DNA of 64,000 bases from Oopsacas minuta (lineage: Eukaryota; Animalia; Porifera): contig JAKMXF010000111.1 in assembly GCA_024704765.1 (NCBI GenBank), forward strand, positions 760,619-824,618, read 5' to 3'. Of this stretch, positions 40,050 to 64,000 are shown piece after piece. Position 1 is the stretch's first letter. Every line of letters starts with the position of its first letter. The notes under the pieces are model-generated. The model did not search any database, was not told where the DNA came from, and saw only the letters and a program-made list of their open reading frames with translations. Position numbers and translations under genes: made by a program.

Positions 40050-40182
40050 AGGGATTAGTGAAACTAAATCAGGACACCAATCAAGAATAAGGGAGGATGG
40101 CACTCACCATCTTGATGTGGGTGCTGGTGGAGCTGAAACAAGTTTTCAACTATTAATCGCCAAATCGATTCATATATTCATG

Positions 40183-40233
<51 letters not shown>

Positions 40234-43200
40234 TATAAGCTACAATATACATTACTGGAATTACTGGAATCGCTAGAAATGTAGATACAGGTAATACCAC
40301 TAATACAGGTATAATTCAGGATTCATAAAAACAAGTAGAAATAGTTGATTCTTATAAGTAGAATCGAGTATAATAACATTATAAAGATAGAGATAGTACA
40401 AGAGACATAAATGAAGTAGCCCTTCATAAATAGTTTAACTTGTACTTTCGTGAGAGAGAGGGTGTTGGAAGTGCTGTCGGGTCGCTGAAATAGTTGGTTC
40501 TGAGAATACTTGTTAAAAGAATTCCCAGATGTACATAGAATAGAATATTTAGTACAGTCAACATCCGGTAACTCTAACATTCGTTGTCTCGAAATGATTT
40601 TGATTTCCGAGTGTTCGAGTTACTTGATGTTAAGTGTATTTATAAGACTTACTTCTCTCATGATCCATATGGAAATAATGACTAGCTGCTGAGGGAGTAT
40701 ACCTCTTTTTCACTTCGGCATTGATCCTCTCCTTCTGTTCTGATATACTGAGAATATGAATAAATAAAATAATGAAATATACCATTTAGTATTTTATATA
40801 TTCATCTTACTGTCTATCTTCGATCGGATTAAAGTCTCTCTTAGTAGTGGATTCAGATGTATTCTCTTGTCTTTGGAAAGCATTGTGTTGAGTAGTCAGG
40901 AATTGAGAAAAATCATGATAATCTATCATTCCATCTTTATCATGATCACACCTATAAAATTCAAAAATTATGTTATAATGTTCGCGTTTGCTAACCAGTT
41001 TGGTAAACAAACCTATCCATGAGATCTTGTAAATCCTTTTCTGTTATATTGATCCCTTGCTGATAGCAGATGTCCACGATATCTTGTGGAGCAATTCTAC
41101 CACCCCTACGTATAATAGTATATTACTCACCAAAATATTCACTTAGATATACAGCCTCAGTCAGAGGATTTTTATCGATGTCAGCAAGTAATGAATAATC
41201 ATCACAGAAAACCTGTGTTGAAGTGTACTAATAGTAAGTATTTCACTACAAACTGACTCAACCCAAATGCCAGGTAACATCATAGGCTGTTGAATAGAAT
41301 AGAATAGAATAATGTGGAGTAAATACATTGCAATATCTGTGAATGTGGGTTAGTATGAACGTACAGATCTTTGTCGAATTCGAGGAAAGCTTTTCTCAGG
41401 TTTAAGTTAACTGGGTCGCGAGGATTAACGTGTCTATTGAGATAGAATGTATTAGAAATAATCTAGAACGCGTTATAACACAAAAATACTGACTTGGCTG
41501 AAGCTGCACGTTTCAATTTATTCTCTAGTATAAGAGTGTCATCAGCAGAGCTGTTGTTAGTCTTTTCTCTAAAAACAAATATCAAATAAATAGAATAAAC
41601 AGTGAAAAATATAGAATATTTGCATACCTTGGAAACACAGAAAAATGTGAAGTAGGAAGGTTGGATGCACCAGCAGGAGCTGTGTTATAGTCAGGGGGAT
41701 AACCCATGAACTGACAGGTCTAATGATGTAATAAAACGAATAAAGATTATTTAAATTCAACAAATATTCTAACCATTTCTGAGGCATTAGGTGAACAGGA
41801 TGATCCAAATTCAAAATGAGTCTTCCTGTTATCTTTCAGTCTGGAGTTAGTTCTAGCTGTCTCAGCTCTCTGTCGTTGTATTATATCTTTGTCTAGACTC
41901 TGTGGAGACCTGAATGTCCGCTAAGATAATAAGTTAGATCAGTTTAATGCGAGGTTTATAAGTTAAGTAATACGCTGCTAACCTGTGCTTCTGTCTGTTT
42001 GATTGTGTATTCTTCCGGTCTCTCCATAGCAGGCTGTTGAGAGAGCATTTGTACACTTGTTGGAGGTGGAGCTAGACTGGAGGAATGCTCTGGATTCTTT
42101 GGAATATTAAAATTTAGCTGAGTTTCTATAAGATGATGTTAAAGATTTTAATCTTGGATTACTTCTAATTAGATAACAACCTGTTAAACTGAGCTGCTGC
42201 AATCCATCTGATAGCACAACAGAATCCATCCTATCTCTACCTCTATTTATAGAAGTGTCTTGTTTATTAGGAGTAAGGTCTACGTCACCAGACAAAGGAG
42301 CCTTGAACACACTCCTGTTAGTGGTTTGGGGACGGAGTGACTTATCAGAAGGGAAAATCTAAATTTGAGAGAAATTTATTATCTCAGATTTCAATTCACA
42401 CCTCATATTATTACCTTAGAGTCTGGTAGAGGTACTGCAATAGGACAGGAAGGTCTAGTAGACCTATCTTCACAGTTTATATCTGAATGGTAGCGAGTAA
42501 TTCAAAGTAGACTATACTACCACATGTAAAGTAATCACATACCTTGTTGATATACTGACTTAGGGCGCTCTCTAAAATTCCCAAACTACAACAAGAAATA
42601 TCTACTCAATTTCGACACATATTAATATTTAGAAATTTATAAATAAGACAGGATCGAAATATTGACTATTTTACTTAATACATACAAGAGAACGATCGGT
42701 TGACGATATACGCAATTCATAAAATATCATACAAGTTGTATGGCAACCTTGAGATATATATAACTACTATGTCAGGTCGAATACTGAACAAGAAACCCAT
42801 AAGACGCTTGCCTTATCTCAACCAATTAGACATATACGCTGTTTTAAACATATGCACAGAAAAGAATACTTAATAAGTCTCCGTACAAGCCAGCGAATAA
42901 ATGAATAATTAGTATTTGAATTTAACTTATCTTATAATTCTCTAACAAATCATCCAAAAATTAAAATACTAAACTCCGTGAATTTTGTGGATAATGAAAA
43001 TTTGTATGTAACAGAGAGGAATTAAGCTAATGGCTAGACTGGGACAAATAATAATATATAAGCAATAAATTTTCCATCTCTGCTCCGACAAACGTCTCAC
43101 TTAAATAAAACTACATTGAAAAGTGTAGCCAATTACATAATTAACTGATCTAAATTCTAACTTCAAAGTGAGTGCCTGTTTGAAAGTTTGTGCCGAATTT

Positions 43201-43941
43201 GTTAGACCAATCTATAAGAAAAGAAATGACAACAATCTAACAAAATATATTATCTAATTCTAACGAAAAGTGAATACCTATATCACTATCATCAATTATA
43301 GGTTCTGTTGTCTTTGGTTGATTAGCTAGCGTAGGTTTACCAGATCTTGGACGTGATGTAAACTGATTTTTCACCTGAATTAAAAGAATAAAAATAAGTG
43401 AAAGAAGAACCCAGAGATCAGATGGTAGCGTACCTCTGAGGGTATAGGGGAGAAATTATCCTGAGTTGTACTCTCGTAAGTTCCTTCTATGTCCAATGGA
43501 ATATGCTCAGCTACAAAACACCGGAAGTCATCACAAGAAGTATTATTTCATACAAATGAAATTAGAGAAACAAACCTAATAAATACTTTGCAAACCCGAC
43601 GTAGTCAATTCTGCCGTCTCCAAGCGGACTACATCTATGTGAATAATTAAAGCTTCATTCCATTTCAAAGGAATACAAACAATACAACAAATACTTACTC
43701 TTTTATTAGAAGATCTATTTCAGTGTCAGTGATTGGAGAAGAGATGTCATCACAAATCTGTCTCAGACTATCAATAGTAATATACCCACTTTTATCTGTG
43801 TCATACTTTGAAAAAGCAGATAGAACGTTAACACTAGTGGGATCTCTAGGATTCTGGAACTGCTGGTAGTTCTCAGAAAGGAGGTAGCTACGCAGAGCTC
43901 CAATTGCTCCAGAAGCATTGGAGGACTTTATCTGCATCGAC
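40050..43941 (-). CDS. Multi-exon EF-hand protein (EFHB-like modules), 3' portion; exon structure only partly resolved and 3' end approximate
   Basis: Exon 43941-43699 plus exon from 43634 give GAIGALRSYLLSENYQQF...AFSKYDTDKSGYITIDSL...E|CSPLGDGRIDYVGF. A second EF pair near 41100-40900 reads DLQDLMDR|CDHDKDGMIDYHDF. Many small GT-AG-bounded exons lie between. Confidence 0.6.
40192..40231. repeat. (AC)20 microsatellite
   Basis: Direct reading of the sequence. Confidence 0.95.
40555..40636. mobile_element. Small 82-bp MITE
   Basis: TA both sides; TIRs CAGTCAACATCCGGTAACTC and CACTTAACATCAAGTAACTC (16/20). Confidence 0.6.
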
Positions 43942-44856
43942 CTTGAAATAAAGTTACGACATATATATGAACCGACAAAGTTAGGGACAAAATTCACGTA
44001 TGTTAAGTACGAGCATGCAACTAGCTAAAAATATAATAAAATCCGATAAATAGAATAAGCAAACAAGTAAACATAGAATTGTTAGTAATACACATGTAGG
44101 TGATATATCGTACATACATTGCTAGTAAGAGTAATTACGGATCTAGAATTGCAGTATTGTATGCTCATGATACATCATTCAAAGGATTCAGACGTATCAA
44201 AGACATTGCATTAGCTCAATACAATAGTTTATAGGAATGTATTGCAAACCAATTTAGATAGTGATTGATTGAATATGAGCTTCAAACTGAATCAGACAAT
44301 ACAACTAGTGGAGCGTTTACACAAGACAACTGTATGTAAGTCAGCGTAATATGTAATAAAATAATGTAGAAATGATACATGGTGGTGGTAATATAAAACT
44401 TGATATTGCTACCTTAGTGGATAGGCCCATTTACAGATCATAACTCGACTATAAAGCGGAAACAAAATACAGAAATAATCACAAAAGATATTAATCAATC
44501 GTTCAAAATACTTTTACTTCAATAAATTTGTTGTTTGAATTATCAAATGGTAATATAGATACATGGAAATCCGTGAAAATTAACACTAGCAAGTAGAATT
44601 AGAGGTATTTATCAGGAATTCAAGATGTTTACAGCTAATAAATTTGATTCTATAATTTATCATTACAAACATAAGCAAAATGTGTAAAAATCAGAGGATT
44701 TTTGTGAATTTTTCAAGTGGACAGCTCTAGTAAGTATATAGTATGTTTAATGTAGTTTCCGTTCATTATTTCAATTATGAGAATGTAGTAACTGGTGTTA
44801 ACAAAGTAGTGATATATTTTTCTTCATATATTAATTAGAACATTGATTAACAAATA

Positions 44857-47800
44857 ATGGAAGGGGCAAATACCCAAACTGGGAACCCTTTCAACGCAAC
44901 CCACTTTAATCTTGAGATCGCAGGCTACCTCAGGACAGAAGATATCATTTATCTGAATTGCAAATCGAAAGATGAGCAATATGTTATCTCAAGTGATGGG
45001 TTTGGTTCAAGCGAAATATTCCTAGGTGCTTATCAAGATAAATTTCCTCTCTGGAAGTCTGCTTTCATAATCGAACAAGCTACCTCAGTGCACATGCTGA
45101 ATACAAAACTATACCATGAAGGGTGCAGTAAGAAGACCAAACCTTCACAGACAGGCAGCACTAAAATACACAAAACTTTGACTTATGGAAACGCAATAAT
45201 TCTGAGACATCTCACAAGTAAAAAGTACCTAGCTTGCCAGCCAAGGATTGGAAATCAGAGTGATTACAAACTTAGATTTGTTAGAATAGTAGGTGATGGT
45301 TGTTGGTTCATCGTGCTACCTGGAAACACAGCTTCCTGTATCGGAGATAAAGTGAAGACTGGAGATGGAGCTCTGCTTAAAAACCATTTGACAGAGAGGT
45401 GAGTGGATCAACTTAAAATGTAAATTATATAAACGTATACACTCAAACTTGTCTATAACGGCCACCGAAGCCGCTATACAGAGGAATATTTATATTTAAT
45501 ATCGTGCTACGGGATTATATTTAAGTGACCGTTATGTACAGGTAACCGTTATACAGGTTTGACGGCATATATGACATAATTTATAGAATGTATATACAGA
45601 TACATCTACCATAAAATGGATGAGAAAGTGAGAACATTCTCTCAATCACAAACAGATGCACCACCACCATACATGATAGAGCGTTCCAGATCGAATCCAA
45701 GTCAGTCAAGATCAATAAGACATAAACTATCAAAAGCATTCACAATCTCAGAGCAATTTGAAGATAACGAGTATATAGGATCTAAAGAACTGAAAAAGAT
45801 TGAACTAAAGATTGACTTCAAAAAGACAATCTGGCGTATAATGGTACTAGCTTCCAGTGACGCTAGAGATTTGTATCAGGACTATTTAAGTGGAGAGGAT
45901 TACATTCAAATACATTCTCCCGTAAAAGGGTATCTAGGTCCTGAGGTAGGAGGAGAAATACAACCAGACCAGAAGCAACGTGATTTATCGCAGAGAAAAT
46001 CTCTCAGCTGTTTAGATGAATTCCTAAGCAAAGATTATATAAAGGAAGATCAGCCGAAATTGGTTTACAAACAAGATACAAGTGGGGTAGGTAACGTATG
46101 GCGAGTGGAGACAATCAAAAGTGTGGGTGGAAAGTGGGGCGCATCTTTCGTCAGATGGCAACAAGCATTTAATCTAGTCAATGTAGTGACAGGTACATAT
46201 CTAGCTTACTGCAAGGAAAAAAGAGAATTATGTCTAGTAAAGTTGGAGGAGATTGGCGAGGAAAATCATACATGTGATACTATTGATTTTAAGTGTTTAT
46301 CTATTTGTAAATCTAAAATGGACATAACAGGAGCTAAGACAAGCACATGTACTCAAAACACCATGACATTCCCGAGAGGAAAAGATGAAATTTTCTTTGA
46401 CGAAGAAGAGTTTTCGCCTCCTCAAATAAAGTTTGCGGAATCTTCAATTATCCTGCTAGCTGATACAGAACAGATGCCATGTGTTGCTTTCGATACTTTC
46501 GTAACAGAACAGAAGGAAAGCTCTAACATAGCTACAACCAGTCAGGATCATAAATATATTTTCTCACTCAACTTTTCGCTGGTTCCTTCAGAAAAAGCTT
46601 ATGCAGCTAATCTTATTTGTGTTACAGAAGCAATCGTTGATGCTTTCAAATGTTTGAGAAATGAAACACTCAAAAATGAATTCAAAAACTTTTATCCAAT
46701 TAGGAAGAATCTAAGGAATATGTTAAGTGATCTTATGAGCTATTTAGATCCACAAAGGGATAACACATGGAATGAAGTTGATTCTAGAGACCCCACTATG
46801 AAGAGGCTAAGCTTAAGGTTAGTTAAGTCTCATTACATTTAAGAGAGTAGTTCACAAAGCAGTAGGTATAAATTGTTGTAAAGTAAACAGTGAAATATAT
46901 TAGAGAAAACGTGTCTAAATTATGCATGATGTTTTACGCAATACCAAAATTTGTTAAAATAAATTAAGAGTTCAGTATTTGTAATTATTAAACAACTTGT
47001 AGGGCAAAACAGACACTATTCAGCAGTGAAGGGATACTCCTTGAGTTTCCTGCTATCCTGGCCTACTTACAAGAACTCCGTTTACAGATCCGTATGGAGG
47101 TTAAGAGAGATCATTTGAGAATGATTAACGAACTGACAAGAGATATTCTAGAAGTAATTGCATTAATGATTGAAGGAAACCCGGAAAATTGCCAAAAATT
47201 AGTCAGGAAAGATTGGTTAGATATTTTCTTCGATTTGTTAGAAATTCAGGCTTTTTTTGAAGGAGTTTTAAAAGTACTACATCTTGCAGTACAAAGTAGT
47301 CCAACAGTACTCACACTTTTCTCTGAAAACATTGAATATTTTGACCGTATTTTCAATCTTCTGGAGAAATTCGGTAGGAATGAGAGGGTACTTGATCTCC
47401 TATCAGCATTGTGTGTTCATGAAGGAGTTGCGATTAGACGCAATCAGGATAATATCACGAAACTTCTACTCGGTTCAAACATAAGAAATTCTCTCTTCCT
47501 GAAAACCTACTCTATCGAGATAGTCGATTTCTTCAGACCCAATCTTTTCCTGCATTATGTCCCTAACAGTGCTTCCTATACTGAATGGTTCTTCGAGGTA
47601 GAGTTTAAGTCAACTTCTGATCATAACGAAGAAGCTCTGCATGCACGAGTTGGCTGGGCTTATGTTGAATATTTTAAAACTGAACCTACAATAATCGCAT
47701 ACGAGAGTAACACGGAACTTGACACTGAACCAGTGAAAGTTGGAGTAGGTAGTGATCTTACATCTTTTGGTTTTGATGGACAATTCATGTGGATTGGTGG

Positions 47801-50800
47801 GAACAAATATCAAGTGGAGGAGTTAATGGATGAAAATCTACAAATCCTCCATGAACCTATCACGATAGGTTGTTACATAGACATGCAAAAGGGCCGAGCT
47901 TGGTTCTTTTTGAATGGGAAACAAGTAAACATTTCAATAACAGGAATTGTTCCAGAGGAATACATAACACCTGTAGTGAGCTTAAGAGGACAGGTACAAG
48001 CTGTTGTAAGATTAGGAAAAGAATTTGGAAATTTCAAGTACCCTCCTCCTCAGCACCTGTTTAAACCAGCACCCTTATGTGATGCTCGTCTCTCAATCAA
48101 TGATTCACTAAAGATGGAAAAATGGGTGTGTCCAGATCAGATGGACAATAGACAACTCGATATCATTACTCCAGATGATCCTTTACCAAAAGGAGTTGTA
48201 ACTCTATCAAGTCCAATTTCTCCAGATAAATTCAATGCATATATACCGATACAGGTCCAAGATTTGGAACCAATGACTCCGAGTACTTCAATTGTTGACG
48301 GCAGAAGAAAATCTCTCCCTAATTTCCAGATTGCTTTCCAGTTAGGAAGCAAGAAGCAAGACCTAGCAGAATTCCTTCATGACGCCTGGAGTGAGAAGTG
48401 TCTCTCTCTAGACTATAAATGGGGAGAAGTCACTGATCCTATTAAGAAGACTATGAGAGAGTTAGACCATTTTGATAAACTGGATGAACATGATCAAGAA
48501 GAATACATCGTACTAGCTGAAGCACTCATAGATGGGTTGAATAAGTATGATTGTAATATCAATGTACTTAATTGGAAATATGAACGTCCAAGGGAGAGGA
48601 GCGAAGTATACAAACCTTTGCATTACAGTTTAGCAAATCATTCTAAACCACACTGGAATCGCTATCATGATGCAATCTCTCGGCAACTTGCTGAATATGT
48701 TCATAATCAACTCTGCCTAAAGAAGATACAAAGAGGTTGGCGTTACGGTTATGAAATGAACGAGCAATTAAAATTACACCCCTCACTTCGTCCATTAGAG
48801 AGTTTCGAACAAACTACACTCACATACTTGAGACTACGACATCTAATCAACAGTACAATCCAGCTAGTCCTAGCATCAAATGGAGGGAATTTGGAATTAA
48901 AACACGATGAAGAAACTAAAACAGGATTAGAAGAGTCAAAAGGAGAAACCAGATTCACTACTTTCAAGGTTTCTAATCAGTTCGCTGTATCCTACAAGGA
49001 AAACGGAAATAACCGTTGGTATTTCGAGGCTATTATAAAGTCGGAAGGACAAATAAGAGTAGGTTGGGCTACGACAGATGCGACGCCTGGAATACCACTT
49101 GGTGACGACAAACATTCCTATGCGTTCAGTGGTTACTGTGTAGCTTGTAAATGTCATAACAACACAGAATCTTTTGGTAGAACTTGGAAGAAAGATTCTG
49201 TTCTTGGCTGTTTTTTGGATCTAAATGATGGTACAATTATTTTTTCACTGGACGGACAATTCCTCAGAAGCAGTAGTAACGTAAAAAATGCATTCACTAA
49301 CATTCCAATAAACAAGCGTTATCTACCAGCTGTTTCTCTCGGACCTGAGCAGAGAGTCATCCTCAACTTTGGTCAGAAACAGGACTCATTACAAATGCTT
49401 CAAAGAACATTTGAGCAGCCTGAAGTGTTCACACCTTTCGGGGAAGGAATAATTTGTCAAATTCCTATTTACATTTCACAGAGAACAAATGATTCAGTAA
49501 GAATTGAAAAAAGTGGAACTCAACCAGTCAGAATCTTAGACCCACAGAAACAATGGAAAACACCTCCACCAATCAAACTACAGTTAAGAAAGAAGACACG
49601 AATGCTGTATATGTCTCTAAATATGGGGATATGTCCTCTTAGAGCTGGAGAGGAACGGTTCTCCTTCAGTGTTTCAATTCCTAATCTCGACAATAGACAA
49701 GCTTTCGAGCGTGGTTACATAGGATTCACAACATCACACTTCACACAGATGAACTCTCAATACCAACTCCGGGCAATAGGAGAAACACATAATCCAGGAC
49801 CTGTATACTCATTAGATAAAGAATGTCTAGCAGCTGGTATTGTGGGGGAGGAGAATACTCCAGGCGAGTTGATTAGCTTCTATCTTGTTCCTCTATCTAC
49901 ATTCATTGATCAATTCACAAATGAGAAGCCTCAAGCTGTCCACACTAACTTCCTCAGAGTCAGCTGTATTATGGATCTCATAACACGTAATGTACTGTTC
50001 TATCTGGATGAAGATTTTATCTGTGAGATTCCTATTAAAAACTTGAACTTCTTTCTCTATCCCAGTCTACTGTACGCTGGTAATCAAGGAGATATAATAG
50101 AATTCGATTTCAATCCCTTTAGAGAATGCAGTCCGTTTATTCACGGGTTACTTGATCCAGAAATTTGTGGGGATAACGTGTTCACGGAACGAATGCATCT
50201 CCGAGTCTCTACTCCCCATAAATGGTCCAATTTGGAACTCAATTCTAACAGATTCTCCATTCACCTGGAGCGTGATGAAGGGATCAGTATTAATTCAAAA
50301 CTATCGCCATATCGAGCATCGCTTATGGATTCTGAGAATTATGAAGATAACGCATTTCCAAGTGTTGGAGAAGACTTGCCTAGGAGATTTTCAAGGATAT
50401 ACAATATAGATGCAGAACTCACACATCTGGAAGAAGATACTTTTGAATTTTTTCCGTATGAAATTCCGAAATTTGACACGAATCTCAACCATCCAAACAA
50501 AAACATGCATTTGTTGATACCAGAAGAGAGCTGCTTGATATCGTTAATGGATACAATTGAAAATAAACAGCTGATAGAATTCTATACAAAAACTATTCTC
50601 TTACTAATATCAGTCTGTGATAAAGACTTTATTAAAGCTAAAGAGATGGTACTAGACTACGTAGGTTTCCAGCACTTACTCTCTTCTCTAGAGTTAGGAA
50701 TCCAACAGCTGATACCCGTACAACTTAGCCTTGCAATATACAAACTCTGCATTGCTCTATTCCTTGAGGCAGAATATAACCTAAAGGCTATGACTAGAAG

Positions 50801-53800
50801 GGAATCCCTAATTGAAATGATGACAGAGCCTCCTCAGATAATAACTGTCCTGCCAAGAGACCCTACTATAAACGATTTCATTGAAGAAAGAGAGTCTGTT
50901 GGTTCAATGTCTGGCTGGCACTTTTCCTACGGATCACAACTACTAGCTCAGCTTAAAGGTATGGTATTTGCAAAACTCTGGGAGATTATGTCAGTCAAGC
51001 TATATACTTGTAGCTTTCTGAAAGATAAGAAAATGAGAGAGGGCGTGCTAATGCCGTTACTGAATGTCATCAAACATCTGGTGCTGACAGAGAAGCTAGA
51101 TCCTAAGGAATATACCTGGCTAATGCTCATAATAGAACCGAAATACAAAGCTTACATCTGTGACGAGACTAGAAACTATGAGTTACCTTTCAAGGAGGGA
51201 TTACTTGGTATTCTAGACTTGGAAGATTCTGTAAAATATGAAATCTGTAGTATTCTGGATTACCTCTATGACCTGCACATTAGACGTCAAGTCTACAAAA
51301 CTGTTCATTTCATGATGAATATTTCTAATGACATCAAACAGAAGCAGGAAGAGAAGATGGAACATTTCAAGAACCAGCCTCATCATCCATCAGGAAGAGA
51401 ATTAAGACAACCACCAAGTCAGCAAATAGAATACTTCCTAGAGCAAGTTACTCAGTGCGGAGTTGACAAGTTTTATGAAATGCCAATTGAGAAACTTAAA
51501 AATTACTTTTTGTATTTTAAATCTACATTTGAATGCAGATCAAAGTACTGTGAAGACAGCTACGAAAAGCAAACAGACACACCTCCACAAATGTCCGATG
51601 ATATTACTACAGGTATAGCAGAACGACCTAACACTAAGTTAAGAGATTCCATAATAGAGGGGTTGTTAGGCTGGGCTAGACAGATTGCAGATAATCATCC
51701 GCTAAGAGAAATAATATTCAGTTTAGTACGTAGATACGTGAGTAGAGTAGAGGAGTTTAGGGATGTGTTAGCTCGTACTTATGTACTTCCTAAAAGCTCT
51801 AAGAAATCAGAGACCTCTAGCTCTGAGACAAGCAGAGCAGCTGAGATACTCGGGGCACTAGGTCATCTCAGATCAGTTCTTAATATCAAACTCAATCAAC
51901 AAGATGAAACTCGTCTCACTCTTGCAATAGGGACACTAACCAATGCAAACGTTCTCTTCCAATACCCGGACTCTCTTTTTATCCTAGGTGTGTATGAAGC
52001 CGTACTGAACGTAATGGAGCATATTCTTAGAGAATGTCTACCCAAACAAGTGCAGAGCAAGTTGAAGAAGAGAATTTCTGTAAAATTCGGGACTTTGAGA
52101 AAGATACATTCGTTTGGTATAACTCAAAACACATTTGCTTGTTGTATCCACTTCCTCTGCTCGCTAATAAGATATTTCCCCCTCTTCTCTATACATAGTT
52201 CTAACTCTACTGATGTGTTCTTCTCAGAATTAGACAAGTTGATAGAACTATCTTTTATCTACGTGCACTCAACCAAGAAAGATGCTCTCTCTAGCCCGTT
52301 AGAAGTTGTCAATTCACTTATCAAGCAAAATGAGAAACTAACCCTCTCATTGAAAGAAAGTCAAATCAACCAGATACTAGAATTCCTAACAAACACGTTG
52401 TTCAAAGTTCCTGATTCGAAATTACGCAAACTTGATAGTGAATATCAATTCCGTCATGGGCTATGTTATTTAGAATTTCTCAAGTACGCAGTATCATCTC
52501 AGGAGAAATACATAGAGACCAATGCAAAGATTGTAGTTATGTACTTTATCAACCACAAAGAAACAATCGACCAAGCTCTACTCAATTTCTTCAGTAAGCA
52601 GACACTTGCTTCAGAACCTGAATTGATGTTCTATACAAACTTCCTAGATTTACTTGGTAAGTTAATTTTAGTGAAATTTACCCCGCTCGAGAAATTTCTA
52701 TCAAATTACCATAAATGGTCACTCAAATATTGTAAACATTTAATTTTTGTTAGACTTGCTTTCATGTAAATGGGTGGGACATATGTGTACTATAGGAAGG
52801 TCTTTATTTTAGTAGTAGAATTCTCTTACAAAGGAATATCAATTACATGAATTGTAAAATTCATTATATTTCTAGTCAATGTTGTACCTGTATGATGTTG
52901 GAAATATTTGAACTGTCAACTATTAGCTAAGGGCAGATTGTGCTATGGGGTTGTTCAAACGTTACGTAACGCTACAGTTATTACTGATATAATAAAGATT
53001 CAAAATTGCTGAGTAGAAAATATTCCAAGCAATTATTCAACTAGCAACTTTAGCAAATGTGTTAACAATTTAAAAGGAAAATCATTTTTGACCCCATCTC
53101 CCTGTGTCACGCTTTTTCACCGTTTTGTAATACAAAAAGATTGGGGCTGTCACACTTCGAATACCACCCCCTCCCCTTGATTAATGAAATATCTTAGGGA
53201 GATGTGCACCACCACGTAAATATGAGGATGGAGTAGAAGAAATATCAGAATCACAAAATAATAATGAAAATCTGCAGTTTCGAAAGAAAACTTGTTTGCT
53301 TTTACAAAACTTCATATCTGAGAAACTAATTCTTGAATTTCTAAGCATGAAGGGACATCAATTAGAAGATAAATGGATGCTCTACAAGTCTGCCCTTATA
53401 GCTATTCTCGACAGGATACATGGTATTACAGAACCACAGAGTACAAGTGAAAGTAAGACTGATACAGAAAGAGATCAATTAGGATATCCAAACACAGAAT
53501 CACGTAGTAGCTTTTTAGAGTTGGTAGATGGGCCTTTCCTTTGCGATCTAAGCAGAGCTTTGCTGAAGCATCAATTCGAAGTTAGTGATACCTCAAGAGA
53601 CCATCGAGGCCATGGATCATTTCGCGAGGAGCCTAACACTCCTCTACAAGATCTGACCTACATAATGAGTGCAGTACTGCCTGTTATAACAAAGGGATTT
53701 CATAACATACATCGTCTCCTACTAACCAATACAGAAACTCATATACTTAACTCTACTCTATACGCTACCTACTGGATATCATTCCTGATTCCAGAGAAAC

Positions 53801-56800
53801 TGTCAGGACGCTACAAGAAACCTCTAGCAGAGTTCTTCTCGGAATTTGCTATCGTTATCCCTCCCTTTGTAATGTGCAACTTCTTCAGATGTATAACTAG
53901 TGATATTTCGCATATGCGGTTAGGAACTGCACAAGTTCTGTTCAAGTTCTTCCAGCAACATCTTGAACATTATCAATCTTATTATAATCAAACAAACTCT
54001 GAGTTACAAGGAAGAGCAAAACTACCTGAACAAGAAGATTTAATAACTTTGTTTTTCCAACTCTTATACTATTTGTTGAAGAATAATGATAAAGTTACAC
54101 CAAAAGAATTGGCAGAAGACCACCCAATTATCCCAACTCTTATTGCTCTATCAGGTTGTATCAGTCCAATGACACTAACCAAAACACAAATAGATGATTT
54201 GTTATCTGATATAAATAATATTGAAGCTACACATAGCGCTTCATTCGATGCAGATATCATATCATTGGTTGTTCCAAAACATTCTTTTCTACCATTCTCT
54301 TACTACAATCGTAACCAGAAGAGAGATGGAGAGAGGAGGAGAATGTCACTCAGACGAGGAGCTATTCGGTATAATCAACTTGAAGAGAAATTGCATCCAT
54401 ACGGGGAAAAGTTTTGGGAACAAGTGAAGGGAGAGATCGCCATACTTAACGAGGAACTTGAATCACTGGAAGACCCTAACAAATATTCCAGATTAATGTC
54501 AGAATTGGTTGACTGTCTTGATCAAGAAAACCTGACAGTGAGCACGTTAAAAGAACGAGAAAGGGATAATAGTAGTACGAGTATATTCTCGTTACAGTCC
54601 TCAGATGGAGAGTCATCACTGCCCCTGACACGTACAGAAGTCCCTAGGAGAGACACAAGTTATAAAACCTTAAAGAGGATGTCTTCAACAAATAGCTTCC
54701 AGCATCAATATAAAGATGAGTTCACAGAACGGTTAAGCAGACATCTATACTTCTGGGTATGTGGTCCACACTCCGCTATAGCCAGTCCAGTAGCATCGTC
54801 TTTACCTACTAGTGCCCACGATGTAGAACATATGCCATTTGAAATACTTCTCTCCAAGAAGAGACATGCACTCAAAGTGATAATCAATTATTTCTTCCAG
54901 TTATTGGACTATATAGGATTAAGAGTAAGGAGAGGACCTAATTCAGAAAGGGTAGGATCTAATTTTCTTTTCGGTACTGAAGAGGATGGTGTATCTCCTA
55001 AGTTACAGCGATTTTCTCTTCGATTACTACGCGGGACAAAAGTATTTCTCGAGAAAACAACTGGAGATGATCCAGCGTATCGTGCTCCCAGCTCACTACA
55101 AGACATTGATGAATCAGGGAGTGCATTCGTTACACAGCCAAAGAAATCCAAATCTACGTATAGTGCTGATAACTTAAAGTTCTTCTTGAAAGTACTAATC
55201 CCTATTCTCAACAGACATTTCCATCTACACAAAGTATACTATCTGAAGAGTGGTAGAGTATTTTATCAGGTTACTGCTACAGCCCAGGAGAGCGATGAAT
55301 TATCGAATCTATTCAGTGAATTCGTTACACATCTCCCAAAGATTCCATTATCTCTAGAACCTTCCAATCGATCTATCTTTACATTAAAACTAAAAGTATT
55401 TTTGCGTCGTCTTAGTGACGCAATCGAAGTGACCCCAAAGATGGCAGAAGAAGTTGGAGCTGATGGAACATACAACTTGTCTCTATATATGAGGAGTGGT
55501 AGTCATATAATGGAGTTAGTATCAAAACGCACCGGCGAGTACTCCTCCTGGATAAATATATCCTGTACACTGACTATTATGCTTCCTTTCTTTATAAATC
55601 TATTCAGGAAGATAGGAACTAGTTTGGAAGAAGATGTAGTGGAATATTTCGATAATCTAGAAGAATCAATTCGAGACAAAATCAAGCCTTATCTTAAAAT
55701 CCTGTATAACTCATTGATGAAAATAGCAATACAGTCTGAGCTACAGAACAATACCGTAATGAAGGAACAGATCGGTACGTGTATAGGATTGTTAACACAA
55801 GTTGCTCCACATGCTATATTCAAGGAAAAGATGGAGAGTTACGGAGTTAATGTGAACACCTGGCTAGATAGCATGTCTAGAAGCGAACTGATAGGAAATA
55901 TCATATTTCCGAACTATATTCATTTGCCTATTCTCTCATACACACTTGCGAAATATGGCAGAGATCCAGAAATAGACCCGCTTAAATTCCAGAAATGGGT
56001 GGACCAATTCATTGAAGAAGCATTTAACTGCATGCTGGAGAAGGTTAGGCTAAATCGAGATTTCATTCTTCTCTGGATAGAGACACACATTGAGAAGATA
56101 ATAATATGGTGCTCACCTGAAGTATTCTGGAGAAAATTTCTTGAAGTAATCAGTGAAGTTCGTATCCACCTGCTACAGGTGTATAATGCTGATAAAGCAG
56201 AACAACACAAGATACAGACTCAATCACAGAATAAGACAGGATACACGAATATTGATAACAAGTATTTCCAGACTATGTATAAGATTGTAGCTCAACAGTA
56301 CATTACAAGTGAGTTGATGACTATATTACGAAATAACGGGTAATAATTAGAAAGAATTATCGTTCCCAATGAATGCTTTTTCATTCAATATACCAATATT
56401 TACACATTCTGTGGATCCACTGCTATCGTCCGTGAACTACCAAGGGTCCAATGACCCCAGGTTTGGAAACCGATAAACTATCTTTACTACATTAAATTTT
56501 CTAGCAATTTCATTATTATGGCGTTACATCACAAAAGACAACATTCGTGAAGAGGTAGAGAGAAGAGAAGTGAATGATAAGTTCGTTAGCTTACTAATTA
56601 TACTCATGGAGATATTCGCTATATGGTGTGAGTCCCAATCTTTCAAGAAGGAATGTTTAAGTCTTGTAAAGTTAATTAAAGATCTAATAGTATTTGAGGA
56701 TTCAATGTTGTTAGGGGTAAGTAGAGGTAGTCAATGCGTATTTAGGAAACAAATATGTTAAACTAAATTCAATAGGTAATATTCACAGAAATGGAGATTA

Positions 56801-59800
56801 ACACAAACTACCCGCTTGAGCGTAGAAGCGGTATCGTATTAATCCTAAGACGTATCTTACATTTTGGGAAAGCTATTCCTTTCATCGAAAAGAACGAATG
56901 TTTGATAAATGAAGGCGTTAAGCTGCTACAAGAAGGGAAATCTCAGCACGCAGTGTCTGACTTAATTAGAGAAGAGTTTGCTCCGAGCGAACCAAAAAAT
57001 CCCAAGCAAGGAACATTTAAAAATCTAACTTGCATAGCTAACAATATGCTCTCACGGAGTGGCGGTGATCATATACAACTATTCATGAAGGAATTCATTC
57101 TTATGAAGCACCGCTTAAACGTAATGGCTAATCATACTTCACCTGGTGCTAGCAAATGGAAATGGCTCAGACACAAACAGATAATACGTAATATGATAAA
57201 GTTTCTAGCTAGCAAGCAATTGTGTAAAATGGCAAACTTCAGAGTAACCAACCATCTAATCCAAGGATACAGATTAAGGGTATTGTCTGGGCTAGAGTCT
57301 AATCAGAATCTCATACGAAATCTAGTTCAGAGCAATGTAAGCTGTCCTCAAAATGTAAGTACTGTGTAATTTGTGGATAATCCACATTAATGACTTGTCT
57401 AATACTAGGTTTCAGGAGCTAGTCTCGAACACATAGATTTCCAGCCAATAGCTCCACTAGTCTCACTGCTAGAGGTTCCAGCCAAAACTACTCATGAGGA
57501 GCAGTTGTATCTGGAGTATACACGGTATATGTTTCAAGCCTGTGACGATCTCTGGAGTGAGCTGGATGAGACTGATGACACCATGGATGATGAGAGAGAC
57601 CCCACAGAAGTTGAAGACAGGAAGTATAGGAGGATAGCACTCGAGAAGTTGCAGGTCAGTATTTATACGTAGAGTACAGCTTCGTTGATTTAAACTGTAT
57701 TCAAATAATTCAATACACTAATAGGAGAAACTCAACCATCTAGAAGTTCCACAAATGGTGATTAAAGTACTGATCAACTGTAGAGGAATCTGGTCTGCAT
57801 CTATATACCACTGCCTCCAGCTGGGTATAGCTATACTAAGAGGAGGAAATGAAGATGTACAGGAGAGTATGCTTACTTTTATCACCAAAACTTGTCCGAA
57901 GGAAACACCTCTTTTCAGAAACATATCAAAGCTGATAACCAGCAGTACAGTGCTAGATCTAGAATTATTCAATAGAGGAAAAGCTATTATGACTCATGGA
58001 CATATACAGTCTAAGATAAATGCGTTAGGTCACTACGAGTACACCATAGCATTGTTTAGGTGTGTTTAAATTAATATGACGTCACATACTTAGCTGAATA
58101 ATATATTACATGGTCCAATTGGTGTAGGTTTCTTCAGTTGCTCTGTGAGGGACATAATGCTAGTTTCCAGGAGTATCTACACACACAGGCTGGGAAGAGT
58201 ACAACAGTAAACCTAGTACAGATTACAGTTGATTATTTGCTACTGATGCAGGAGTCTATCTCTAGTTTCTGTTGGCATTATAACAACATGGATCATATTG
58301 AAGCAATGGGACAAGACAATATATCATGTGCTTTCTCAGTTATCAAGCAGGTTCTTATTACACTAACAGAGTATATACAAGGACCGTGCAAACTCAATCA
58401 GACTGCATTATCGAGATCTCGTCTATGGGACGCTATACAGGGATTGTTAAGACTATTCGCATACCTCCAGGAACAACTCAGTAACACAAACTCTATAGAG
58501 TTATTAAGAGAAGTACTCAAGGTGCTTAGTGATATGATAATCCTATTACTGAGTATGCTAGAAGGAAATCAAATGTCAAGTGAGATAGGAGTATCTATGA
58601 AGCATACACTTGTTGACTGTAGAAATGAATTACAGGATATTACAAAGTTCTGTTTCATGTTCATTAAGCTTAACGACACACTTACCTCAAAAGCATTCAC
58701 ACAATATGATACCAATAAAGACGGGAGGATATCTCGACTGGAATTTGAACGATCATTGCAAACTCAAAAGCAGTATTCCCCAGAGGAAGTTGATTATTTA
58801 ATGCGATGCGGGGATACTAACAGAGACGGATACATAGACTATGCTGAATTTCTAGATAGGTTTCTGCTAAGAGCGGAAGAGATAGGATTTAATTTGGTTG
58901 TTTTGTTACAGAATCTATTCGAACATCTTCCAAAAACTAATTCTGATTTTGAGCTCAATGACTTGAGGAATAGAGGTAAGGAATTAATGGAATATTTCAA
59001 TAACCATCTGGGATCTATTGAAATAATTGGGAAGAGCAGAACTGTTGAAAAGGTCTACTTTCAGATTCCTAAGAGCTGTAGGGACCAGTGGGCACGTTCT
59101 CAGATACAAGAGTCTAAGCGTGAGTTTATCAACACATGTGATCACGAGAATGTGAATAGCAAGCTAGACAAATTCATAGATTTCTCAGAGAATACAATAT
59201 TCGAGATGCGACATTTCGGTAAGCTCTGTCAAGTTGAAGAATGGGAGAGAGAGTCCAGAGCGAAAAGTCACCGTGATCAGAATATAGAAAGATTTAGAGA
59301 AATCACGCCAGGCCCTCAGTCTCAAGAATACACAACAAGAAATACGATTCGAACTTCCACATATTCTGGGACAATCAAAGCTAAATGCTTGTGGATATTC
59401 TTAACAGTAATTCACATAATTCTATGGTGTGGTAAGAATGTTGGACGTCTGATACCAAAGCGATATCGGAAGAAGAAATGTACTGAAGCTACTCCCAAGA
59501 CCTGCTGGCTTAAAGGAGAAGACACGTGCATGTTACCTGGAGAAGATATAATAGCGGCAGGAGACTGTGTTGAATTGGAGCCATCACATTTAATGAGAGA
59601 AGCAAAGCAATACTATGAAACTTCTAAAATAATACCTGTAGGATTTTCAGATGAATATGTAGACTTAAAAAATAAAAACTTTTCTCGCTTGAGGAAATTG
59701 AAACAGTACATGAGAGATCTAACACAACTCACTCACTACTGGCCACTCATAATTCAGTCAAATTTCAGGTTGTCCAGTTTCCTAGTCGAAAATGAACAAA

Positions 59801-61110
59801 TGTTGAAAAGTTTGCGATTCTTCTCAGTTATTTTCATGAATTTTCTATTACTGTTCTACTATCAATCAGATCAAGATATGTTCGCGTATGATTACCAAAT
59901 ATATCTGGTGCTGACAGCAAGTCTTCATGTAATGCTCTCCCTCCTGCTTCTCTACACATATATTATGTGGAAAGTACCATTAGAGTGTTTCAAACGTGAG
60001 AAGAAGATTTGTATTGAAATTCTACAGAATTCAGACATATTCAAAAGCTTTCTGGATAGCAATAGCAAACCGTTCTTGTCACAGTATTGGTGGGATGCAT
60101 GGGCACTGAAAAGTGATAAATTTCCACGTATGTATTGGGATAAACACTTCAAGCACAAAGTACGTGAAAATTACTCTGAAATGGACAGAGATGAGGAAAT
60201 CGATGAACTACTTGGAGAGAACATGGAAAGAAATGGAGAGAATAATGTAGACGAGGAAGACAATTATAGAAGTCTTAATGAATACACACATGGGAAGTTT
60301 GGTGTAGATTACTACTATGCTGTGTGGATGCTTTTCAGAGTATATCTCAGTGACAAGAATCTGTTATTCTCACTAATGTACATATGTTTCACGTGTATGG
60401 GACTGTTGTTTGATCATTTCTTCTTTGCATTTCACCTCATCCCGGAGATGATGGGGTATTTCAGTACTTTAAGAACAGTAGTAGTGTCTGTTACAATCCA
60501 TGGAAAAAGACTAGTATATACGACTCTATTGATGAGTGCAGTTATATTCATCTACACAGTATTTGCATTTAGGTTTTTCACAACTTACTACAGCAAGAAT
60601 TGCACTAACATGGTAACTTGTCTCCAGTTTCATATGAGCTCTGCTCTCAGATCTGGGGGTGGTGTATCTGACGTCATAGATACCCCAGATAAGAAGGATC
60701 CATTAGTGCTCCCCAGATTCCTATTCGACATGTCATTCTTTTTCATAGTTATAGTATTCCTCCTGGCAATTATTCAAGGGTTAATCATCGATGCATTCGG
60801 AGAGCTACGAGATCGAGAAGAGGGAGTTCGTGCTTCAATGCAAAACAAATGCTTTATATGCGGTATTAATAAGGACAAGTTCAATCAAGTACCTCGTGGA
60901 TATGAGAAACATACAAGCAAGGAACACTACTACCCCAATTACCTATTCTTCCTCATGTATCTGATTAACAAGCATGATACACTGTACACGGGACAAGAGT
61001 CATACGTATGGGACCTGTACTTACAGAGGAAGTGGGACTTCTTTCCTATAGGCTGCTACTTCGAAAAGAACAGTAACGAGAAGCATGAAGCAGAACAACT
61101 CGTAGCATGA
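44857..61110 (+). CDS. RYR: Ryanodine receptor, ~4953 aa; exons 44857-45398, 45600-46817, 47003-52656, 53198-56308, 56505-56716, 56776-57336, 57409-57654, 57725-58059, 58128-61110
   Basis: MIR/RIH N-terminus, three SPRY domains, RyR repeats (LAEFLHDAW, LAEYVHNQL), LLCEGHN, LTEYIQGPC, EF-hands, six TM segments, AIIQGLIIDAFGELR, CFICGI, TGQESYVW. All eight introns are GT-AG and phase-matched; total CDS 14862 nt. Confidence 0.95.
45440..45565. mobile_element. Degraded MITE in RyR intron 1
   Basis: Left CACTCAAACTTGTCTATAACGG versus reverse complement of right end CCGTCAAACCTGTATAACGG; TA on the left. Confidence 0.55.
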
Positions 61111-61251
61111 TAACACACGACATTTCACATTCTAAGCAGAATATATGGATTTGATTAATACCAGAATTTGATATTGTAGTTATGCAGCATTCTAATTCTA
61201 CATATAGCAAATAATGATATTGTTCAATATATATGAGGAATATGCACTTAC

Positions 61252-62859
61252 TTTGGGAGTACGTGACTATATCCCTTAGGAGTTATGGTGCTCACTCCCG
61301 CGGCGCCTCCCGTCTCATTGATGGGAGGGGAGAAGTCAGAGGGGTTGAATTCGGAATTAGGGTTAGGACGGAGTCTGGCAGTAGATGCTCTACCCTTTGC
61401 AGATTTTTGTCTTTGAGAAGAAGGGAGGTGTGGGAATCGAGTAAGACCCATAGCAGTGATCGGGGTGACTAGAGGAGGAAGTGAGAAGCTCACTTTTGTT
61501 TCTGTCAAAGATCTGAAGAGAGTGAATTATAATGTATACACTTGCTTATAATAGTTTTAACATACAGAGTAGGATCGTTTCCTAGAATAAAGTGTGTTGT
61601 TCGCTGATAATCAGTGCTTTTGGATCGTTTCTTGGATGTAGGAGATTCTAGTTCTTTTTCTTTCTTGAGCCAGTCACGATAGGTCTACAAGGAAGAATTA
61701 AATAATAGTATAATTATAGTTTATCCTTAGTAGTTAGCAAAACGTACCACAGTTCCATCAAAGTGATTTTGGTACATAGAATCACCCATCTTGAATTCCC
61801 CTACGTATTTGGAGGACATATCCTATAATCACAGAGAGTATACATTACATCAATGGATACTTGATAGAATGGAATGAATGAATAACTTGGAAGGTCCCTA
61901 AGGCTGATTTTTTACGTGCATACTTACCGGAAGACTACATAGAGTTGGTGGTAGAGATTGTTGTCTCTAAAGGATCAGAAATAAGAAATAATGCAACACA
62001 ACAAGACAAAAATATATCAAAATACCTTCTTATTAGATTTTATCAAGAAATCTGATTGTACTGTACTCTGAAACTCATTGCTAGCATCACCGAAAGTTAT
62101 ATCACTAGAATTCTACAAAGGAAATACATTCGCAAATAATAGGGAAATTAACACAGGTTCAGAGTTCATTTGTGATAATTGCTCCCTTATCTCACTTTAC
62201 AACGGAGTACATAATAATAACGGATAAGGCCAGAAGGGTTACAATTATGGATTCCATTTGATTGTCCCCACGTGTAAATATACAATATTTTCTAGTAAAT
62301 TTAATACATACGTATTGAGATTATTCATTCTACATACATACATACCTGCAGGTTAGCATTCCATTGAGAAGAGGTAGAAACTACAGATGGTTCATGCTTC
62401 TAGATCGAAAGTAAAAATTAATAACCACATAGATAGACATAAGGCAATGTCGAAGTATGATTGAACCTCAAATATTCGTTAATAATTAATCTTACAGGTG
62501 GACACATCAGCAAATTATGAGAATTTTAGACAAGCACTCGATCACAATGACTGAGTAGAAATGGGAGATAGCCCGCATATAGAAAGCTCGTATAAGTGAA
62601 TATTAGGGTATCGACCATATGACAAACTATTAATAAATATTATTTTGTACTAAATTATTAATTAAAGATTTGCTAAAAATACATTACTTGCTTTGTAATA
62701 TAATTTATTGGTAGAATTCCATTCATTTTCTTCTCTCCCCCTGTCTTCTGGACGTAACACAGCAGAGCGACAAAGCAAATCTCGTAAAGCTGCATTGTCT
62801 TTCTGTCTGCAACTCCCGTAATAGGCCTCGTACACAGGATTACGAGCTCCACTTAACAT
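61252..62859 (-). CDS. 5' exons of a minus-strand multi-exon gene, probably the same gene as the EF-hand exons at 40-44 kb
   Basis: Exon 61684-61566 (…QRTTHFILGNDPTL) splices in frame to exon 61512-61252, which ends at an AA|GTAAGT donor. Probable first exon from ATG 62859. Middle exons unresolved. Confidence 0.55.
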
Positions 62860-63110
62860 ACTATATCGGATAGCTAAACCATCAAAATAGCCATTTGATG
62901 AGATTTAATACGAATTAGGAAATGCATTAGGTAATGTATTTTGAATGGATATTTTAATAAAAAGAAATATACAGTGATAATGAAATAGAATGAGCGTATC
63001 TGTAATCTACCAGCTGAACTCCCAGAAAATGTCCAATAGCAGTCTGCAATATAGTGCAGAGTGTAAGCAGCTCTTTTCGTGTAATAAACTATTACAGATT
63101 TGCAATATTG

Positions 63111-63427
63111 TTAAACATCAGTAACAGGAGGAATAACTGCTAGTCCAGAGGCTGCTCTGCATGTGTGCATACCGGATACAAACTCCCAAGTATCAGTCCT
63201 AGGGTCGTATATTTCTGCTGTATTGAGGTAAGAAGGGCCGTTAATACCGCCTACAGCGATTAACCGAGACCCTAGCTCTGTGAGACACACGCCATCTCGG
63301 GGTGTTGACATTGGACTGATGGTCGTCCATTTTCCAGCAACAATATCAAAGCATTCCACTGAGCCAAGTCTACAGATACCGTCATTACCTCCAGAAATAT
63401 ATACACGACCTCCTAGCACTGCAACTC
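63111..63427 (-). CDS. Kelch-like protein, last exon only
   Basis: GVAVLGGRVYISGG...VECFD...W, SRLIAVGG...AEIYDPRTDTW. Begins at a TAG acceptor (63429-63428); no upstream kelch exon inside the window. Confidence 0.85.
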
Positions 63428-63615
63428 CTATTACACAATTGCAAATAAATACAGTAAAAGTGAAATTTAAGCAAATATCCAAACAATGTAGAAATGCAAG
63501 ATTTTATGTATAAAAAATCATAAAAAAAGGGTATTTTTAAGTATACGAGGTATTTAGTTGTATAATCAGTTCTTAACAGTGATAATAATACAAAGCTTAA
63601 ATGTATATAATACAC

Positions 63616-64000
63616 ATGGAAAAATTATATCACAACAAAATGAGAGAATTGCCTATTCTATTCTTAGCCCTGACTTGCTATATTGGTGTTCTACAAATGG
63701 GATTTGAGGGCGGTTATGTCTCTCCTACAGCAAACTCTCTCATTAAATACACTCCCTTAACAATCAATATTCTACCCATTTTCGCTGGATTCATATTCCT
63801 AGGTACCTTGGTAATGCTACCTCTACTGAGTTTCACTTCTCAAACAATTAACAGTAAGGCTCTGCTGATAGCGTCAATAGTACCAGGTTGTGTAGGTTGG
63901 TTCACAGTTGTCTTAAGCAATGACGTGTATACAATGTTGCTAGGAAGATTTCTGTTGGGCATACAGTCTTCTATTCTATTCCTTACTAGTATTTACCTTG
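63616..64000 (+). CDS. MFS sugar transporter (GLUT8/Tret1-like), 5' partial
   Basis: Open frame MEKLYHNKMRELPILFLALTCYIGVLQMGFEGGYVSP...LLLGRFLLG-type TM1 G..GY.SP and TM4 GRFLLG motifs; runs off the window. In-frame ATGs at 63601, 63616 and 63640. Confidence 0.8.
   Translation, partial: MEKLYHNKMRELPILFLALTCYIGVLQMGFEGGYVSPTANSLIKYTPLTINILPIFAGFIFLGTLVMLPLLSFTSQTINSKALLIASIVPGCVGWFTVVLSNDVYTMLLGRFLLGIQSSILFLTSIYL

Follow-up and report, generated by a model that had tools for sequence, protein, structure and literature searches.

Nested genes are frequent in the glass sponge Aphrocallistes vastus, in which 2,432 genes (12.4%) lie within others and many of these arrangements are conserved (Francis et al. 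2023, PMC10282587). Nearly half of the genes are in conserved microsynteny between A. vastus and a second glass sponge, Oopsacas minuta, of which the published annotation contains 83 nested genes only; a trans-spliced leader has also been reported in glass sponges (PMC10282587). The word 'ryanodine' does not occur in that paper, 'nested' is absent from the O. minuta paper, in which ryanodine receptors are mentioned (PMC10280926), and a literature search for a described nested ryanodine receptor (RyR) gene returned nothing relevant. Here we describe a 64,000-nt stretch of O. minuta contig JAKMXF010000111.1 (positions 760,619 to 824,618 of the forward strand, assembly GCA_024704765.1; hereafter the window), in which an entire RyR gene (the guest) is located, in antisense orientation, within a 17.3-kb intron of a gene encoding an EF-hand protein (the host). 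This nest is real, expressed and conserved.

A ryanodine receptor gene within an intron of an EF-hand gene

The analysis made use of sequencing runs X1-X4, which represent four runs of one sample, and X5, a single run of a close relative, as well as of relatives' loci L003-L009, drawn from six separate ENA assembly records. The features that define the nest are as follows.

61252-61512, minus strand: host exon 6; ends with ...GYSHVLPK and the donor GTAAGT (61251-61246); an RNA overhang matches its 3' end, and the donor is conserved in L003-L005
43942-61251, minus strand: host intron 6, 17,310 nt; contains the RyR gene; junction seen in RNA
43699-43941, minus strand: host exon 7, with the first EF-hand (Pfam); RNA joints on both sides; acceptor and in-frame ATG at 43937 conserved in L006-L009
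44857-61110, plus strand: RyR coding region, 16,254-nt span; at least seven large exons, with open reading frames (ORFs) that add up to about 4,800 aa
43942-44856, no strand assigned: 915-nt spacer separating the RyR ATG from host exon 7; covered by X4 contig 23
61111-61251, no strand assigned: 141-nt interval separating the RyR stop codon from the donor of host exon 6; read from the sequence

Read on the minus strand, the 61248-61508 ORF terminates in ...CTC CCA AA/GTAAGT (the slash marks the exon boundary), position 61251 being the G of the donor. At the other side of the RyR gene, the EF-hand exon is preceded by ...TTTATTTCAAG (…TTTCAAG)/GTCGATGCAG, which makes 43941 the first base of the exon, next to the acceptor AG at 43943-43942 (minus strand). 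Both sites are in phase 2, and their joining produces a GT..AG intron and an open, in-frame reading (...GYSHVLPK-SMQIKSS...), with the junction falling at aa 252/253 of the host product.

Contigs of X1, X2, X4 and X5 were compared with the window between positions 40050 and 46000. Runs X1 and X2 behaved as DNA, their contigs being continuous over introns and over 43871-46000, while X4 behaved as RNA: its contigs omitted 15 listed CT..AC stretches, corresponding to minus-strand GT..AG introns. One X4 contig departed from the genome behind position 43945 with 57 extra letters. The 30 printed letters of this overhang were identical to 61256-61285, their single occurrence in the window, and the chance of such an exact 30-letter match in 128 kb (both strands) is approximately 1e-13. 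The letters preceding the overhang, TTTG (61252-61255), had been aligned onto 43942-43945 with one mismatch, and the RNA joint is therefore located exactly at 43941/61252. The depth of the junction contig in X4 (986) was similar to that of the adjacent exon contig (1029).

The first-pass annotation of this DNA had placed the whole RyR gene antisense inside a 17.3-kb intron of an EF-hand gene, with a phase-2 GTAAGT donor at 61251, a phase-2 acceptor at 43943-43942, no break in the frame and exon ends 61252 and 43941 joined. On re-reading, the splice sites proved exact to the base, the X4 contig carries precisely the proposed joint, and the RyR coding region falls entirely within 43942-61251.

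Since the junction is carried by one short contig (∼90 nt), and chimeras can arise in contigs assembled from 31-letter words, the possibility of an artefact was considered, either a chimeric junction contig or a misassembly placing the RyR gene between exons 6 and 7, in which case the 61-62.9 kb exons and the 40-44 kb exons would belong to two separate genes. However, the joint coincides exactly with a GTAAGT donor and a pyrimidine-AG acceptor of matching phase, and its depth is like that of the neighbouring exons. Moreover, the orthologues described below, two of which come from RNA assemblies (that of Oscarella and the Logan contig encoding P0015), have the exon-6 motif directly before exon 7, the DNA layout is the same in the relatives' assemblies, and the X1 and X2 DNA contigs span 43871-46000. 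An artefact of either kind is thus extremely improbable.

The guest itself has the complete domain set of an RyR. Successive plus-strand ORFs gave Pfam matches to Ins145_P3_rec, MIR, RIH, SPRY, RyR, Jsol (junctional solenoid), RIH_assoc, EF-hand and Ion_trans, and the closest named matches were RyRs (Geodia barretti 'Ryanodine receptor 2' and RyRs from molluscs and nematodes), with the last exon 45-51% identical over its conserved part. The pore region (60577-60690) reads GGGVSD, the canonical RyR selectivity filter being GGGIGD. The coding span occupies 94% of the 17,310-nt host intron. The number of its exons is a lower bound; an automatic GT..AG search for a complete exon model gave ambiguous results. 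In X4 record 23 (7,776 nt) the RyR first intron is removed at ∼45397-45597, in the plus-strand sense. The RyRs of other animals are alike in domain set and size, whereas the present gene is nested within another and consists of only a small number of very large exons.

At the 5' end of the RyR gene, a pyrimidine tract with an AG (44820-44856) ends 19 nt before the ATG. At the 3' end, no canonical AATAAA was found in 61111-61251, and the RyR 3' UTR may overlap host exon 6. A ∼35-nt repeat at 45436-45470, within RyR intron 1, showed a depth far above that of its surroundings in X1, X2 and X5 (in X5, 370 vs ∼5), with loose contig ends on its left; this is probably a dispersed repeat.

The host gene and its product

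The host gene was modelled on the minus strand as 23 exons encoding 830 aa, with the ATG at 62859 and the stop codon at 40437-40435. All 22 introns are GT..AG and frame-consistent; in order, they measure 570, 59, 105, 63, 53, 17,310, 64, 65, 59, 66, 576, 60, 56, 55, 62, 54, 59, 60, 259, 61, 63 and 153 nt. With intron 6 set aside, the lengths range from 53 to 576 nt (n=21). Exons 7-23 were set by the RNA joints of X4 (15 listed), while exons 1-5 were located by tblastn with full-length relatives of the host product combined with three-frame reading. The exons not given above are the following.

62683-62859, minus strand: putative host exon 1; ATG at 62859; 59 aa; aligns with the N-termini of orthologues; 65-83% aa identity in L003-L005
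62026-62112, minus strand: putative host exon 2; 29 aa with an SDITFG motif; placed by homology and GT..AG sites in phase 0; conserved in L003-L005
61928-61966, minus strand: putative host exon 3; 13 aa; phase-consistent GT..AG sites; homologous stretch in L004; the weakest exon of the model
61748-61822, minus strand: putative host exon 4; 25 aa (DMSSKY...); placed by tblastn with orthologues; 88% aa identity in L003
61566-61684, minus strand: putative host exon 5; TTHFILGNDP repeat motif; placed by tblastn with P0003, P0010 and P0015; 90% aa identity in L003
43576-43634, 43434-43510, 43278-43374, 43162-43211, 42543-42585 and 42415-42482, minus strand: host exons 8-13; X4 RNA joints
42181-42358, 41983-42125, 41774-41920, 41628-41719, 41494-41568 and 41365-41433, minus strand: host exons 14-19; X4 RNA joints
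41013-41105, 40811-40951, 40653-40747 and 40241-40499, minus strand: host exons 20-23; X4 joints, with a predicted intron at 40952-41012

The 5' part of this model differs from what had been proposed at first. The assignment of the 61.2-kb ORF to the EF-hand host was upheld, although the ORF corresponds to an internal exon, exon 6, with five predicted coding exons further upstream. A 644-aa model, in which the ORF at 61248-61508 forms the first exon with the ATG at 61451, was abandoned because the orthologues have ∼200 more N-terminal residues and because the exon with the THF repeat is brought into frame through the acceptor at 61514-61513 (ctctcttcag/A). The exon 5 donor, CT/GTATGT, leads in phase 2 into exon 6.

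Near the 3' end of the gene, the region 40811-41105 appears as a single open exon. When read as one exon it gives a premature stop, and the frame is mended by a 61-nt intron hidden within it (40952-41012, minus strand). The placement of this putative intron is based on a loose end of an X4 contig at 40955, and on the restoration by its removal of both the frame and a canonical second EF-hand pair (..DLMDRCDHDKDGMIDY..).

A search with exon 7 against 1.8 billion representative proteins yielded full-length relatives of the host product. In a single blastp alignment (E 2.5e-95), residues 14-823 of the product matched residues 22-807 of the 818-aa Oscarella pearsei protein P0003, crossing the exon 6/7 junction. 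Proteins of Corticium, Geodia and Mnemiopsis align in a similar manner, also across this junction, and in the orthologues the exon-6 motif AAGVST.TPK.YSHVLPK stands immediately before the exon-7 sequence. Among the best-scored of 8,000 candidates, the named full-length relatives were 'uncharacterized' sponge and ctenophore proteins and a Geodia 'calmodulin-like protein 2'; the search with the Oscarella orthologue was restricted to the 8,000 candidates with the largest number of shared words, and glass-sponge proteins were not among its matches. The corrected 830-aa model delimits an EF-hand family that is conserved in sponges and ctenophores and carries no name.

In the host product, Pfam recognised no domains other than EF-hands; it contains two EF-hand pairs, each with an NPRDP-type helix before it (FQNPRDP... 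and HVNPRDP...). The best PDB match of a profile of the host orthologues was EFCAB6 (7rro, 8i7o, 9fqr; E 1e-50), a likeness that holds at the level of single EF modules: EFCAB6, which occurs in structures of ciliary doublet microtubules, is a protein of ∼1,500 aa with many EF-hand pairs, whereas the host has only two. Full-length orthology was not found, the matches being confined to EF modules of the 1,500-aa protein. In the Oscarella orthologue, the LRATHFxLG repeats near the N-terminus were matched by a doublet-microtubule protein of Tetrahymena (8g2z chain 6H, deposited as 'Nebulin'; E 1.6e-8). EFHB, considered as a candidate identity for the host, was set aside, no EFHB chain being among the 60 PDB matches listed. 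Judging from these similarities, the host product is probably a Ca2+-binding protein associated with ciliary or flagellar microtubules.

Several other observations concern the host gene. An acceptor-like site (62860-62875) has its AG 1 nt before the host ATG. The occurrence of acceptor-like sites before both the host and the RyR ATG fits a spliced-leader pattern. Across host intron 11 (42586-43161, 576 nt), X4 record 21 (42574-43190) runs unspliced, at a depth of 66 vs 853 for the spliced form, which may reflect intron retention or an unrecognised intronic feature. A (TG/CA)n microsatellite is located at 40180-40240, between the host 3' end and the adjacent NTF2 gene.

Conservation and transcription of the nested pair

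The same arrangement was observed in the relatives' genomes, in which the RyR last exon is 90, 88 and 80% identical to that of O. minuta and the second exon 72-83%. In L003, L004 and L005, host exons 6 to 1 follow in antisense orientation 125-204 nt after the RyR stop codon and are themselves followed by a kelch gene. L006-L009 contain NTF2, then host exons 23 to 7 in antisense orientation, then the RyR 5' end. No homologues of exons 1-6 were found on the 5' side of the RyR gene, and none of exons 7-23 on its 3' side, in L003-L009. L004 and L006 overlap and belong to a single contig, on which both sides of the nest are visible and the intron measures ∼17.1 kb. The donor (CCMAA/GTRAG), the acceptor (TTTAG/A..) and the phase are conserved in the relatives. 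The identical layout indicates that the nest is older than the split of these species.

A further locus from a relative, L002 (ENA ERZ26869290, ctg233296), was rejected for the synteny comparison. It is a palindromic mosaic in which host exons 7-18 recur as inverted copies, and it looks like an amplification or a long-read assembly chimera and not like genome structure. The host locus was also sought in Oscarella and Geodia, which would date the nest outside the glass sponges, and no gene with exactly those products was on record. In the relatives, the BTB-kelch gene next to the host has a sugar-transporter (MFS) ORF between its kelch-repeat ORFs (L003, 15251-20007; L005, 7963-12226). L004 has two transporter ORFs, and the corresponding region of the window is 63111-64000.

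The reading that we prefer, with a probability of roughly 90%, is that the two genes form a nested pair of the ordinary, cis-spliced kind, within a sponge genome that is compact. The host would be transcribed on the minus strand, from 62859 to 40435, from a promoter that would be situated just downstream of the neighbouring kelch gene. Transcription must cross the 17.3-kb intron 6, which is spliced out by the 61252-43941 join, and the RyR gene, on the opposite strand inside this intron and with its own start, is separately transcribed and spliced. The pairing as such would then have no special meaning beyond the abundance and stability of nests in glass sponges.

Some points weigh against this reading. 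Exons 1-5 of the host are predicted from homology and from conservation in the relatives, and the contig depths on which expression is judged are means that carry no strand. In addition, X4 record 23 runs unbroken from 43912 via 43942-44856 into RyR exon 1. It is the sole contig that is unspliced past 43941, and its depth of 131 is the mean over the 7,776-nt RyR mRNA contig. The RNA over 43942-44856 may represent host pre-mRNA, RNA from upstream of the RyR gene, or the product of a proximal host start at the ATG at 43937. With unspliced RNA leading from exon 7 to RyR exon 1, the host may have a second start, or the RyR 5' end may be long and extend over exon 7.

A second host start would imply two host isoforms, which we regard as possible but doubtful. 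The exon-7 acceptor could also serve as a spliced-leader acceptor, or a proximal promoter could lie in 43942-44856; either would give rise to a short, 578-aa protein translated from the ATG at 43937 and devoid of the N-terminal repeats. This would be compatible with the nest, the short form coexisting with the long one. The in-frame ATG is situated 4 nt past the acceptor and is conserved in L006-L009, although the methionine may have been conserved merely as a residue of the protein, and the homologue P0002 (554 aa) begins just before the FQNPRDP motif. The RNA is contiguous from exon 7 into 43942-44856, but this unspliced coverage is explained equally well by host pre-mRNA or by RNA from upstream of the RyR gene. 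Spliced-leader trans-splicing is reported in glass sponges (PMC10282587), yet the sole loose end listed at the acceptor consists of exon-6 sequence (agreement 1).

Compared with these two isoforms, a functional meaning of the nest is clearly less probable, and we consider a link between channel and host, as put forward in the first-pass annotation, unlikely. Convergent transcription would, on this proposal, couple a Ca2+-release channel with a Ca2+-binding host, or make their expression mutually exclusive. Even relatives with only 80% identity in the RyR last exon have kept the layout; however, with 12.4% of genes nested in A. vastus and nearly half of the genes in conserved microsynteny between two glass sponges (PMC10282587), such conservation is expected without selection on the pairing. 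The RyR gene fills 94% of the intron and ends 141 nt and 915 nt from the host exons, so that an antisense overlap of the transcripts is possible. On the other hand, both genes are represented in the same bulk RNA run (the host at ∼1000-1500, the RyR at ∼131), and the host resembles ciliary microtubule proteins, not partners of channels. A more specific version, to which we give even less credence, is that the RyR transcript ends overlap host exons 6 and 7, in view of the 141-nt and 915-nt margins and of the RNA contiguous between exon 7 and RyR exon 1, and that 16-kb convergent transcription keeps the flagellar-type Ca2+ sensor and the channel from being expressed in the same cell or tissue compartment, in an animal that is syncytial and conducts Ca2+ action potentials. 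If true, mutual exclusion would explain why the pair stayed together.

Comparison with known nested genes

As an ordinary nested pair, the locus matters chiefly for gene models. Where a 17-kb intron divides the host, annotation can easily produce two genes, one for an N-terminal repeat protein and the other for a C-terminal EF-hand protein starting from an internal ATG. It also provides a clean, conserved and RNA-supported case for studying how transcription of a strongly expressed host proceeds across a long guest that is itself transcribed convergently.

The first-pass annotation regarded an RyR that is itself a nested gene as noteworthy. The nest has been borne out, but its exceptional status has not, given the proportion of nested genes in this lineage (12.4% in A. 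vastus). Like the nests described in A. vastus, the present one consists of a complete gene within an intron, and the hexactinellid genome around it is compact, its other introns being short; different species share the layout, and it is the guest alone that makes the host intron large. What distinguishes it is that the RyR/EF-hand pair is not in that paper and that the guest, at 16.3 kb, is unusually long. The pair is therefore a new example of the known nested-gene pattern and not a new type of gene organisation.

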